A stretch of 64,000 nt of DNA, taken from the sequence record OP310984.1; one strand, given 5' to 3'. Positions 29,810 through 57,762 of the stretch are shown one piece after another. Below the pieces are notes generated by a model. That model made no database searches, was not told the origin of the DNA, and saw only the letters and a program-made list of their open reading frames with translations. Both the position numbers and the translations under genes were made by a program. Position 1 is the first letter of the stretch. Each line of letters starts with the position of its first letter.

Positions 29810-30343
29810 TTAACTTTCTAGATAACGGATTTGACCATTTTCTAGATAACGTGCTGCGCCATTCTCTAATAGCCGGATAGTATCTGATGTATCATCAATA
29901 CGTTGAATTAGTATATTACATTCGCCATAGTAAGCATAACTACTCGACATAGCTACTATCGTGTATGGAACAACATCCGTAGTTGCATTGATTGGTGTTG
30001 TATCAAATGAAACATCATCTGGTCCAAGCTTCCAACCCCGTGAACGGTTGATTTCTTCAGCAATTGCTTTAGGTGTTAAAGTACCAACTATCTTAAGGAT
30101 AGATCCTTCACCAATAGCTCGTGGATCAGCAAAATCTAACCGACGGTAAGTTAACATGTACTTAATGTCAGTAGTAATGTCGATCATTTCAATAAATGTA
30201 CGTCCAGGCTCAATCGTGGTTGGACTAAAAAACATATCTTCAAATGTAACTGTTTCTGGTTTGAAGTTTATTTTTAAATCATCCCGCGCAAGTTTTACTA
30301 GCGCATTCCTCGATGCCATGTCATACGGAAAGATATCCTGCAT
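29810..30343 (-). CDS. Virion structural protein with C-terminal RxLENG repeats (gp143 position)
   Basis: 177 aa ending RLLENGAA-RYLENGQI-RYLES. Confidence 0.75.
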   Translation of the reverse strand: MQDIFPYDMASRNALVKLARDDLKINFKPETVTFEDMFFSPTTIEPGRTFIEMIDITTDIKYMLTYRRLDFADPRAIGEGSILKIVGTLTPKAIAEEINRSRGWKLGPDDVSFDTTPINATTDVVPYTIVAMSSSYAYYGECNILIQRIDDTSDTIRLLENGAARYLENGQIRYLES

Positions 30344-53830: not shown

Positions 53831-54913
53831 CTAAACTTTTGGCAAAATTAAATCCATCAGTGAACCTACAATTTTAATGGATGATACTAGATCAGAGGCA
53901 ATGGAGTTTAGATCACCCCATTTTAGACCATGAATCAATACAACATCTTTTGGTTTGAATTCTTTATCAAACGTACCAGCTGCTTTTTCCTGGGCTTCCC
54001 TTTCCTTAATATCAGCCGCTGTTAAGAGCGCAGTCTTAAGACGTTCAATAACTTTCTTATCTTTAATTCCAACCATTGCAGCAGCTTCTTCATGTGTTCT
54101 AAAGAAACCATTTTCATGGAACTGTTCAGGAGGTATTACATATCTCTTTTCGCCATTATGACTAATACATCCATGCTTACCACGGATATTAACAATAAGA
54201 CCAGGATCTAATGATGGATTATAGATTGACTCAATGGCCATAATTCTGCCAGCCATTACATAAAACAATTTATCTGGTTTATTGATGTCAGTATTATACG
54301 TTAAAGAATATGTTTCATTCCATACTTGATTAGAAAGTGCTTCTTCTTCTGGACTAAGTCCGCTATAACCAGGAGGACTAATATTTCTATTTGGATAAAA
54401 TTCAAAATACTGACTATACTCAGTTTTAAATACTTGGATACCTAAACTCTGAATCCAACCGCCATGGTATTGATCCACTAGTTTTGATAAGTCAATTGAA
54501 TACCAAATATTAATCTCAGATAGCTGATTATTAAACTGATCGAATGTCTGTCGACTAAATGACTGAATATATTCTAACATTTCCTCAGGTGTAAAACCTG
54601 GAATAGATTTAGCCATAACTTCATAGTTAAAACTATCATCACCACTCCATCGGTAAATGACCTTAACTACTAGTCTATTAGACATTACATACTTACGGGA
54701 TGTCCCAATATTGATAGCGTGACCAGATGAATCGACTACAGTAATACGATGAAATGATTCATTCCGATACTCGACAAAACGTGAGACAGGGAGATTCCAA
54801 TTAGCGTATGGATCACCCTTAGTGTATGCAGTTCCCGATTTCTTATCATACGGGTGATCGATAGTGGGCTTAACTGATACTTGAGTAAGCCCCGCAATTT
54901 TTAATGTTACCAT
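53831..54913 (-). CDS. Hypothetical protein (gp122 position)
   Basis: 360-aa ORF in the early operon. Confidence 0.75.
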   Translation of the reverse strand: MVTLKIAGLTQVSVKPTIDHPYDKKSGTAYTKGDPYANWNLPVSRFVEYRNESFHRITVVDSSGHAINIGTSRKYVMSNRLVVKVIYRWSGDDSFNYEVMAKSIPGFTPEEMLEYIQSFSRQTFDQFNNQLSEINIWYSIDLSKLVDQYHGGWIQSLGIQVFKTEYSQYFEFYPNRNISPPGYSGLSPEEEALSNQVWNETYSLTYNTDINKPDKLFYVMAGRIMAIESIYNPSLDPGLIVNIRGKHGCISHNGEKRYVIPPEQFHENGFFRTHEEAAAMVGIKDKKVIERLKTALLTAADIKEREAQEKAAGTFDKEFKPKDVVLIHGLKWGDLNSIASDLVSSIKIVGSLMDLILPKV

Positions 54914-55322
54914 TGAAATCTACCTTAATCACAACGGCCTCCAAATCTACAATGTTGGGGAGCCTCTTTTTAGTTTGATGTACGGACCTTCCCTTGAAGG
55001 ATTCACTCTTTTCCTTATTACTTGATTTCTGCCATTTATGCGGGTCACTCGAACAATATAACTTTTCGGTGGCCCGCTTAAACTGTTTTTCTTGAGGGAT
55101 CTCCTCAATGTTTTTCTTGGCATAATCTGTAATAAAGTCCTCTAGCCCTTTGGGCATAAAGGCATCCTGAACAGGATGGAATTCTTCAAAGAAAGTATTA
55201 ATGTATTTATCATCATCTACGGTAGACATCTTATTATCTACCATGGTATTTTTTTCTATAAGAGATACCCTCAGGGCATCTTGCCATCTTTCGATGACTT
55301 CTGGAAATAATTGAACGTTCAT
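54870..55322 (-). CDS. Hypothetical protein (gp121 position)
   Basis: 150 aa; first gene after an early promoter; overlaps the next gene by 44 nt. Confidence 0.65.
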   Translation of the reverse strand: MNVQLFPEVIERWQDALRVSLIEKNTMVDNKMSTVDDDKYINTFFEEFHPVQDAFMPKGLEDFITDYAKKNIEEIPQEKQFKRATEKLYCSSDPHKWQKSSNKEKSESFKGRSVHQTKKRLPNIVDLEAVVIKVDFNGNIKNCGAYSSIS

Positions 55323-55363: not shown

Positions 55364-55399
55364 CTGTAATATAGATCTTAAACTTTTTTTAATGTAATA
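55364..55399 (-). promoter_or_regulatory. phiKZ-type early promoter
   Basis: Minus strand TATTACATTAAAAAAAGTTTAAGATCTATATTACAG. Confidence 0.85.
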
Positions 55400-55408
55400 C
55401 AACATAAA

Positions 55409-55428
55409 GCCCTCCCCGAAGGGAGGGC
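55409..55428 (-). terminator. Terminator of the major capsid transcript
   Basis: Minus strand GCCCTCCC-TTCG-GGGAGGGC-TTTATG. Confidence 0.85.
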
Positions 55429-55437
55429 CTATGTCTG

Positions 55438-55518
55438 TTACTCTTCTAACTTCCGGGCATTACCGTCTTCCAAATAACGGATAGTCCCATTTTCTAGATA
55501 ACGGTAACCCTTTCCAGC
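55438..55518 (-). other. In-frame 26-codon extension after the capsid UGA (putative readthrough domain)
   Basis: AGKGYRYLENGTIRYLEDGNARKLEE then TAA, in frame with gp120 and inside the transcript. Confidence 0.7.
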
Positions 55519-57762
55519 TCACGGCTTAAGATCAGCAAGCTTACCGTTGAACTGAGTTTCGCCCATGACTTTCTGGAAGCCAGTGATCTTGAACTCTAGT
55601 GCGAACGGAATGTTGTTGACGTGTAGGTTGAACGGAATGGCCGCGATTTCGCGAGTAACCTGGTGACCACCACGGGTGATCGGTAGGTCAGCGATAACAG
55701 TAGATACGTAGAAGAACTGACCCCAGGAGAGGATGTCGTTTTCTTGTTGTACTGCGCGGGTCGGAATTACAACTAGCTTACCATCGAATAGCTGGTTGTT
55801 GGTGGAAACGATATCGTACTTGAGATAAGCACCTAGAGTACGGTCGTCACCTTTAGTCATTAGATAGTTAGCAATCTCTTTGTCGGAGCAGAAGAGATAC
55901 ATCGGAGTTTCATCCTGGTTACCGGAGATAACACGGAAGGCAGCTTCAATGTTGGAATCACGGTGAGCCGGGAATAGCTCAGCTTTAACACAGTTTAGGA
56001 TCGCAGCGCAAACGTCGTCCCAACGATCTTTAGACTTGATGGTGTCGATGACTTTCTCAAGATCTAGTTCTTTGTAACGATAGGTCGGACGCATTACAGC
56101 GGATAGTGCACCTTCGATGATACCAAACTTCGGACGGTTGTAACCATTGTGTACAACTTCACGTAGTTGAGCAAGGTAGTTAAGCATGCGCTTAACAGCG
56201 TTGTTGCTGTTACGGATGTTGGTGTTAACGGTTAGAGCTTTAACAACCTCACCCGGACCTTCATCGGTCATGGTGTCCATCGGTAGAGTTACAGGAGCGT
56301 GCATCGGGATCGGATGACGGAACTGTAGTGCACGGGTCTGTAGTAGGTGACCACGCTGACGACGGTTGGTGTTGGTGAAGCGAGTATCTAGTTCGAAACC
56401 GATAACAGCTAGGTCAGTTAGCTGATCTAGAATAGCTTTAACAGCCGGGTCAGCATTATCCATTACTTGACCATCTTCGTTTAGAACTTTATCGACGTAA
56501 GTGTCGGTAGCACCAAACTTAGAATCGCCTTTGGATAGGCTGATAGTACCGCCGAAACCAACGCTTAGACGTAGGCTTAGTTTAGCAGTCTTAAGGTCGT
56601 TAATAACGCCATCAGCTGAACCGTCGATGAAAGTGGTATCGCCACTAACAACAAGGTCATCGCTATCGAAACGGATAACTGCGTTCCGGGTATCACCAAC
56701 TAGATCGGGCTGGAACACAGCGCGAGGTAGACGGTCAACCTTGAACTTAACAACTTTACCGCCGAGTAGAACGAATAGGTTCTTTAGACGACCAGCCGGA
56801 TCAATGGTGTCAGAAACTTCAAGCATGCCACGCTGAATGAGTAGGTTAGCATTGGAGTTACCCATTAGATCAAGACGTACGTTCGCTTTTAGCGGAGCAG
56901 TAGTGATAGTTAGGTTCTGCTCGTTCTTGATGGTGTACGGAGGAACAAGAGCCGGGTCTACGAAGAAGTCAGCATTGGAACCAGCCGGATCTAGGGCAGG
57001 AATTAGTGCAATGCTTTCGTCGTCGAGGATGGAAGGATCACGATAGGCTTCTACCATGTTCACTTCTTCGTTATCCATCTTAACGCCGGATACTTCGTGG
57101 TAAACGTCTTTCATTACAGCGATGTAAGGAAGAACCTGAACAACACCACCTTCAATCGGGTTGATAACGGTGGTCGGATAGATACGCTCAGCGAATTCAT
57201 CCTGACGGCTAGCAGCTAGGTTATAACCAATAGTTACAACACGGAAATCACGCTGTGACTTCTCGTTATAGTTCTCTAGGCCAACACCATTTTCGAATAC
57301 TTGAATGCCACCAGCAGGGCCATTGAACTGATGCTGTACAACCTTAACATGATCTTCATTAGAAGCTTTAGCTTTGGTAATACCACGTAGTGCACGGATA
57401 TATTTAGTTTCATCAGCACAGGCGATAGCAGCCATGGTAGCAGCAGTGATTTGGTTCTCACGGACACGTTCTTCACGAGCACGTACTTGAGGATCACTGG
57501 AACTTACTCGTTCGAAACCATAGTCGTTAACGAGCATTTGCATTTTGTTATAAATTGCAGCAGCATCTTGAATGTCGGTAGCTTGCACGGTACCGAAGTT
57601 TTCATGTGAAATGCTGCTAATAAGGGAACGACCTTGACTAACAACGCTGTCATTTAGACCAATTTCACTTTCTAGGCGGCCAATGAAATCTTCCATTGAG
57701 AAGACTTCGTAATTCTTTTCGCCTTTGTGTTTAAACAGTTCTCTTAGGGCATGTACGCTCAT
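55519..57762 (-). CDS. gp120: Major capsid protein precursor
   Basis: 747 aa; recognised phiKZ gp120; GLE/N maturation site at 163/164; strongly biased codon use. Confidence 0.95.
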   Translation of the reverse strand: MSVHALRELFKHKGEKNYEVFSMEDFIGRLESEIGLNDSVVSQGRSLISSISHENFGTVQATDIQDAAAIYNKMQMLVNDYGFERVSSSDPQVRAREERVRENQITAATMAAIACADETKYIRALRGITKAKASNEDHVKVVQHQFNGPAGGIQVFENGVGLENYNEKSQRDFRVVTIGYNLAASRQDEFAERIYPTTVINPIEGGVVQVLPYIAVMKDVYHEVSGVKMDNEEVNMVEAYRDPSILDDESIALIPALDPAGSNADFFVDPALVPPYTIKNEQNLTITTAPLKANVRLDLMGNSNANLLIQRGMLEVSDTIDPAGRLKNLFVLLGGKVVKFKVDRLPRAVFQPDLVGDTRNAVIRFDSDDLVVSGDTTFIDGSADGVINDLKTAKLSLRLSVGFGGTISLSKGDSKFGATDTYVDKVLNEDGQVMDNADPAVKAILDQLTDLAVIGFELDTRFTNTNRRQRGHLLQTRALQFRHPIPMHAPVTLPMDTMTDEGPGEVVKALTVNTNIRNSNNAVKRMLNYLAQLREVVHNGYNRPKFGIIEGALSAVMRPTYRYKELDLEKVIDTIKSKDRWDDVCAAILNCVKAELFPAHRDSNIEAAFRVISGNQDETPMYLFCSDKEIANYLMTKGDDRTLGAYLKYDIVSTNNQLFDGKLVVIPTRAVQQENDILSWGQFFYVSTVIADLPITRGGHQVTREIAAIPFNLHVNNIPFALEFKITGFQKVMGETQFNGKLADLKP

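Follow-up and report, generated by a model that had tools for sequence, protein, structure and literature searches.

A conserved in-frame extension behind the UGA stop codon of the phiKZ major capsid gene is homologous to the C-terminal tail of gp143 and is probably translated by low-level readthrough

A stretch of 64,000 nucleotides (nt) from sequence record OP310984.1 (the window) was analysed, and this work concerns the short open region that follows the stop codon of its major capsid protein gene, gp120. The window shows 99.5-100% identity to phiKZ-type genomes (47 GenBank genomes) and corresponds to positions 112031-176035 of phiKZ in reverse orientation; its source is a phiKZ-type Pseudomonas phage. 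The 3' end of gp120 reads AAG CCG TGA. The initial annotation had described a capsid open reading frame (ORF) of 747 amino acids (aa) ending in CCG TGA, followed by 26 in-frame sense codons up to a TAA before the transcript terminator. This layout was confirmed in every detail. It had also reported that there is no ATG for a separate gene, and this was found to be correct: the extension frame contains no ATG or GTG, its lone in-frame TTG is not kept in relatives, and none of the three start codons is conserved in frame. The coordinates of the features are collected in Table 1. The 3' end of the capsid transcript is placed here by sequence prediction. In 22 of 23 relatives a hairpin and, behind it, a T-rich TTTATG motif are located 3' of the second stop.

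A run of 26 open codons is not unusual on its own (about 1 in 5 by chance), so the case for the extension depends on comparison with relatives. Sequencing artefact was ruled out as its source by the identical sequence in 47 independent phiKZ-type genomes. A Pfam search with the 26-residue extension peptide matched no family. Among the 63 GenBank records containing the extension, no feature is annotated in its reading frame, and no mention of gp120 readthrough or of a capsid tail was found in the published literature that we searched. Two relatives carry annotated small "hypothetical protein" genes that overlap the extension in a frame different from that of the capsid gene (HPP-Temi, locus L015, 2239-2382; Viktualia, locus L032, 2478-2576). 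These are probably spurious calls set off by the open region.

Table 1. Features of the capsid gene 3' region and of gp143 in the window (window coordinates; all on the minus strand). MFE, minimum free energy.
Feature	Coordinates	Strand	Basis
Major capsid protein gene gp120, 747 codons + TGA	55519..57762	-	ORF list; Pfam PhiKZ_MCP, E value 5e-228; phrog_3231; PHIKZ120 in NC_004629
Capsid stop TGA, next base G (leaky stop)	55519..55521	-	Sequence; TGA in 25/25 distinct extension-bearing relatives
In-frame extension, putatively reached by readthrough, 26 codons, AGKGYRYLENGTIRYLEDGNARKLEE	55441..55518	-	Frame 0 translation; coding conservation in relatives
Linker, extension codons 1-5 (AGKGY), Gly/Pro-rich in relatives	55504..55518	-	Codon alignment
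Repeat unit 1 (RYLENGTI)	55480..55503	-	Arg, Glu and Gly columns invariant in 20/20 sequences
Repeat unit 2 (RYLEDGNA)	55456..55479	-	Arg in 19/20 (CGN and AGR codons), Gly in 20/20
Repeat unit 3, truncated (RKLEE)	55441..55455	-	Translation and codon alignment
Predicted 56-nt messenger RNA (mRNA) hairpin within the extension, 8 nt past the UGA, candidate readthrough stimulator	55455..55510	-	MFE fold
Second stop TAA, closes the extension	55438..55440	-	Sequence; 7 bases ahead of the terminator
Predicted intrinsic terminator of the capsid transcript, 10-bp GC-rich hairpin + T tract	55407..55430	-	Sequence prediction
gp143, 177 aa, other carrier of the tail module, virion-associated lysis regulator	29810..30343	-	phrog_2935; RefSeq "virion structural protein"; PMC12894885
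gp143 C-terminal tail, residues 157-177, homologous to the capsid extension	29813..29875	-	Profile searches

Capsid gene 3' ends were compared across GenBank phages and across contigs from IMG/VR and from metagenomes. The extension was found in 25 distinct sequences that represent at least seven genus-level lineages, with capsid identity down to 66%. The carriers are Phikzvirus, Miltoncavirus PhiPA3, the PA1C/HHBS36_1/HPP-Temi group (Pawinskivirus), 201phi2-1, Viktualia, Phabio, Tepukevirus Psa21 and RVTF4, Noxifervirus, and a dozen or so uncultured contigs. All 25 carriers have TGA as the capsid stop, and all 11 distinct relatives that lack the extension have TAA (25/0 vs 0/11, Fisher test ~2e-9, uncorrected for phylogeny, which all significance figures given here ignore). 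TGA thus travels with the extension, and TAA replaces it wherever the extension is lost. The last sense codon in front of this invariant TGA takes eight different forms. The base after the TGA, counted in 23 sequences, is A in 16, G in six, C in one and never T; two sequences added later have G (L045) and A (L049). TGA closes just 10 of the 53 long ORFs of the window (19%), and T follows five of the nine other TGA stops. A metagenome scan for a relative with a sense codon in place of the TGA found none.

Three of the relatives without the extension are natural losses. The metagenome contig RCUK01000188.1 (L048) belongs to the Psa21-like clade and has a TAA stop; a single internal deletion took most of the extension, and its last bases and the terminator were kept. 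The capsid C-terminus of another (L026) is like those of the extension-bearing L025 and Noxifer. In L028, eight open codons follow the TAA and may be a remnant of the extension. Outside this group, Escherichia phage Goslar (L036), a distant nucleus-forming phage, has a capsid gene that ends at position 1088; its stop reads TGA-A, and the frame behind it stays open for 28 codons, whose sequence is unrelated. The capsid stop is TAA in Erwinia phage RAY and Xanthomonas phage RTH11, neither of which has an open extension.

The coding character of the region was examined on a codon alignment of 20 distinct extensions. Frame 0, the capsid frame, is stop-free in 20/20 sequences. Stops interrupt the two remaining sense frames in 18/20 and 17/20, and the three antisense frames in 19/20, 11/20 and 10/20. 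By these counts a frameshift product (-1/+1) and an antisense ORF were both ruled out as explanations of the open region. The distance from the TGA to the repeat and the internal lengths vary by lineage, and the repeat always stays in the capsid frame. The spacer past the second stop, in comparison, has 15 distinct lengths that fall evenly over the residue classes modulo 3 (5/5/5). The invariant aa columns (one Arg, one Glu and two Gly) are spelled with two to four codons each, and a further Arg column (19/20) has both CGN and AGR codons. Of the codon pairs that differ, a share of 0.32 is synonymous in frame 0, as compared to 0.15 and 0.09 in the shifted frames. The median pairwise ratio of nonsynonymous (dN) to synonymous (dS) divergence in the extension is 0.45, and the tails of PA1C and HPP-Temi are identical at the aa level (dN 0, dS 0.21). 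Ungapped identity between the last capsid residues and the extension was discarded as a measure, being unreliable where C-terminal arms differ in length. An alignment of capsid 3' ends had been proposed as a check in the initial annotation, and its outcome was favourable on every count: the TGA is invariant, the frame is open and the changes are biased towards synonymous ones. Judged by this pattern of substitution, the extension evolves as protein-coding sequence in the capsid frame in every relative that carries it.

The peptide itself has a recognisable architecture. The capsid tail consists of a Gly/Pro-rich linker followed by three R-x-x-E-x-G-x-x units, the third of which is truncated, and the last 21 residues of gp143 follow the same R-x-x-E-x-G-x-x period. 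The likeness of this three-unit repeat to the gp143 C-terminus had been pointed out in the initial annotation, and it was borne out on the window's own translation, the period being common to both. To judge it against chance, a forward profile was built from the tails of 42 other gp143 homologues and run over the complete set of 10,153 fragments from the six-frame translation of the phiKZ-type genome. The profile matched only gp143 (E value 4e-9) and the capsid extension (1.9e-8), with the next match at 0.31. The reverse profile, made from 19 other extensions, matched the window extension (2e-13) and gp143 (2.9e-9), with the next match at 1.1. The tandem pattern is absent elsewhere in the six frames of the genome. 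When the extension was tested as a gp143-type tail, its match to phrog_2935 covered profile positions 157-179 of 180. The likeness therefore goes far beyond chance and is genuine homology, with reciprocal profile matches at E values of ~1e-8. Profile comparison groups the capsid extension with the module that ends the proteins of the gp143 family, and this assignment of homology is statistically firm.

A related-locus search for gp143 gave two loci, and a protein search was used instead to collect its homologues. The tail module is found at the C-terminus of 46/46 full-length gp143 homologues in a large protein collection, including those of distant uncultured phages, and the R, E, R, E, R columns are invariant across 43 gp143 sequences. 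In phiKZ, positions 55503-55474 of the extension and 29822-29851 of the gp143 tail (both minus strand) are identical at 26 of 30 nt, and the rare Leu codon CTA is common to both. This identity suggests either a duplication, in which the capsid tail was copied from the gp143 tail, or gene conversion (exchange) between the two copies. gp143 has been reported as a regulator of the holin gp142 (PMC12894885, a 2026 paper). Its RefSeq label is virion structural protein, it is non-essential by transposon sequencing, and the structural atlas of the virion makes no mention of it. The AlphaFold2 model of gp143 has a predicted local distance difference test (pLDDT) score of 90.9; the tail scores 75-86 and shows beta bridges at a period of eight. 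The model resembles PHIKZ127 (gp127), a protein of the outer baseplate periphery (9xqd_0, Foldseek E value 6e-7).

Codon usage changes abruptly at the capsid stop. Over the final 350 codons of the capsid gene in 20 lineages, Gly is encoded by GGT (312) and GGC (187) and never by GGA or GGG (n = 499); Arg is encoded by CGT (329) and CGC (100), with four CGA, three CGG and no AGR codons (n = 436). In the extensions, 40 of 76 Gly codons are GGA (30) or GGG (10), and 53 of 91 Arg codons are CGG (26), CGA (14) or AGR (13). The capsid codon bias stops exactly at the TGA. This collapse fits a tail that is read by a small fraction of ribosomes, i.e., a minor product, and it argues against efficient recoding. 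The capsid bias itself (window 55522-56571, minus strand, and the same region of 19 relatives) is a useful yardstick of expression level in these phages. Using ARAGORN, only the seven known transfer RNAs (tRNAs) were found in the complete phiKZ-type genome (Thr, two Asn, Asp, Met, Pro and Leu), none of them with a UCA anticodon; this search covered phiKZ only. A phage suppressor tRNA for UGA was thereby ruled out in the phiKZ-type genome.

The mRNA behind the UGA is predicted to fold into a hairpin (Table 1). When phiKZ was folded without the UGA, the outermost pairing began already 1 nt past the stop. A hairpin of -23 to -36 kcal/mol is predicted in the relatives; its start lies 8 nt past the UGA in PA1C/HPP-Temi, PhiPA3 and most members of the 201phi2-1 group, and 0-6 nt past it in the lineages of Noxifer and the Psa21-like phages. 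A stable hairpin is predicted in every lineage, with a geometry that differs between clades. Native extensions fold more stably than their synonymous recodings (mean z -1.3, negative in 20/20 under one null model). The RNAalifold consensus over all clades is weak, so the clade-specific hairpin was tested separately. On a 15-sequence alignment, 72% of the cells of the phiKZ hairpin are paired as compared to 39-49% with the partners slid, and its covariation is 0.236 vs 0.184 in shuffles, a value reached by 0/500; in these tests the structure was derived from one of the aligned sequences, and the peptide repeat itself builds in some complementarity (Arg CGU against Asp-Gly GAC-GG). The hairpin is probably real, with moderate support from folding and covariation, and it is a candidate stimulator of readthrough. 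An Rfam search gave sub-threshold chance matches only, and the apical loop falls on the variable x-x codons of the repeat and is not conserved.

Taken together, we consider it likely that the capsid gene undergoes programmed low-level UGA readthrough, giving rise to a minor capsid isoform with a gp143-type tail. In the proposed mechanism, the late capsid mRNA would run past the extension to the terminator read from the sequence (55430-55407). Most ribosomes would stop at the UGA and release the normal 747-residue precursor. A minority would decode the UGA with a near-cognate tRNA of the host (tRNA-Trp is the likeliest candidate, judging from E. coli), add the 26 codons and finish at the UAA. 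The weak stop, the lack of a T as the next base and the hairpin 0-8 nt downstream would probably set the frequency of readthrough. Extended and normal subunits would then co-assemble, and the flexible Gly-rich linker would present the tail at the capsomer centres, probably on the outside. The six capsid C-terminal arms of a hexamer bundle as helices at its centre, where they enclose a 9 Å pore; those of the pentamers touch gp244, an external protein (PMC11297242). Because the arms meet at the capsomer centre, the tail would be expected to emerge there. The capsid is made up of ~1,615 subunits (PMC11512511), so that a readthrough of 1-5% would give ~16-80 tails per capsid by simple arithmetic. 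The tail would most likely make the same protein-protein contact as in gp143; speculatively, it may anchor gp143 or a shared partner at a few capsid sites. A bolder version of this proposal, in which the hairpin 0-8 nt past the UGA actively stimulates readthrough and the tails dock the virion-associated holin regulator gp143 on a few capsomers, linking capsid production to lysis timing or to the virion function of gp143, is possible and appears doubtful to us.

Passage of ribosomes beyond the UGA is proposed here from sequence data, and several observations weigh against low-level readthrough as the explanation. The rare codons of the extension would equally fit an untranslated region. Part of the conservation of the extension may serve the RNA hairpin instead of the peptide. 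The extension has been lost in several lineages and is thus not indispensable. A search of paper texts for the tryptic peptides of the tail found none. The published capsid model stops at residue 747 with no extra density reported (PMC11297242); tails that are few and irregularly placed would not show in icosahedrally averaged maps.

Of the other explanations that were considered, two take the conservation of the region in a different way. The first is accidental readthrough, with selection doing no more than keep the product benign, or ensure its rapid degradation (a fail-safe tail), without the gain of a function. The viability of the extension-less lineages and the unoptimised codon usage of the extension agree with it. 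A TAA would be the simpler safeguard, as found in every extension-less relative, yet the TGA is kept in 25/25 carriers and T is never the next base; the tail is also a specific conserved module common to gp143, not any benign sequence. We regard this explanation as improbable. The second is an untranslated RNA element in the 3' untranslated region, a hairpin that would keep the abundant capsid mRNA stable or aid termination, in which case the coding look would come from structural constraint. It would account for the stable hairpin in every lineage, for the better folding of native sequences with moderate covariation, and for the rare codons. It does not account for a frame 0 that alone is stop-free in 20/20, for a repeat held in the capsid frame across length changes, for Arg switches between CGN and AGR that alter the first base, for the invariant TGA or for the homology to the C-terminus of a real protein family (gp143). 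We give it a slim chance.

Reading of the UGA as selenocysteine, with the hairpin acting as a bacterial selenocysteine insertion sequence (SECIS) for host SelB, was also considered. Many Pseudomonas have selenocysteine machinery, and the hairpin lies close behind the UGA with its top ~30 nt downstream. The unconserved apical loop and the lack of an Rfam match speak against a SECIS element; the hairpin geometry varies by clade and the hosts span several Pseudomonas species. This possibility is very unlikely. A separate small gene translated by re-initiation after the UGA is more unlikely still: a purine-rich Shine-Dalgarno-like run does follow the TGA in many lineages, yet no ATG, GTG or TTG is conserved in frame, the first codons vary by lineage, and such a gene would not need a constant in-frame position with the capsid gene. 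Efficient recoding of the UGA, by reassignment or a phage suppressor tRNA as in the late genes of other phage groups that recode stops, would place the tail on all capsid subunits and is already contradicted by a phiKZ-type genome that encodes no suppressor tRNA, the codon bias that collapses past the TGA, the nine other long window ORFs that end in TGA and a capsid model that ends at residue 747.

Low-level readthrough in the capsid gene, the explanation that we prefer, has a close counterpart in phage Qbeta. In Qbeta, a host tRNA occasionally decodes the UGA that ends the coat gene, which gives a minor C-terminally extended subunit (A1) in the virion. The mechanism proposed for phiKZ is the same. 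Qbeta (Leviviricetes) is a small single-stranded RNA phage with a large extension domain, whereas phiKZ is a 280-kb double-stranded DNA (dsDNA) jumbo phage with an HK97-fold capsid protein and an extension of 24-30 residues in its relatives and itself. Unlike Qbeta A1, the phiKZ-type extension has a homologue in the tail of a second phage protein, and some lineages do without it; the two extensions are unrelated in sequence. Minor C-terminally extended capsid or tail proteins with a surface-exposed extension are also produced by frameshifting in T7 (10A/10B), the Listeria phages PSA and A118 and the Lactobacillus phage A2. These are dsDNA tailed phages that make an extended minor form by translational recoding, as proposed here, but they use -1/+1 frameshifts at slippery sites; in phiKZ the extension keeps to frame 0 after a stop codon, and the remaining frames are closed. 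The crAss-like and other gut phages also have in-frame stops in late structural genes of dsDNA genomes. They rely on suppressor tRNAs and have many such stops, whereas phiKZ has no such tRNA, a single site and the codon usage of rare decoding. Bacterial SECIS elements share with the phiKZ site a UGA closely followed by an mRNA hairpin within coding sequence, and differ from it in their apical loop and Rfam match, neither of which is found conserved or significant in phiKZ.

The nearest relative of the tail itself is gp143 (phrog_2935), which has three R-x-x-E units with a period of eight, Gly at position 6 and a location at the extreme C-terminus. gp143 bears the module constitutively behind a two-domain gp127-like body, whereas the capsid protein would bear it only after readthrough. 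gp143 tails are also present in distant phages known only from metagenomes.

Downstream of the capsid terminator, between it and the gp121 ORF (54870..55322, minus strand), the 11-mer ATCTATATTAC is located at 55366-55376 (minus strand) after an A-rich run, ~30 nt past the terminator. The same 11-mer is present at the equivalent site in PA1C, HHBS36_1, PhiPA3, Psa21, RVTF4 and the loci L023 and L048. It is probably the phage promoter of the next gene.

Among nucleus-forming jumbo phages, phiKZ serves as the reference. Near-atomic detail is available for its capsid, and maps exist of its proteome, transcriptome and essential genes; the extension is still unannotated in its frame. To our knowledge, this would be the first case of a tailed dsDNA phage whose major capsid gene uses programmed stop-codon readthrough. 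Stimulation of readthrough by the hairpin, if real, would be the first structure-stimulated readthrough that we know of in a bacterial system besides SECIS, and the capsid gene would offer a clean bacterial case for the effects of context and structure on UGA termination. If the tail is made, each capsid would carry tens of copies of a previously unseen and probably surface-exposed module common to gp143. This would mean an added virion component and a concrete lead to the position of gp143 in the particle, and it would reveal a natural C-terminal site at which the capsid tolerates added peptide.

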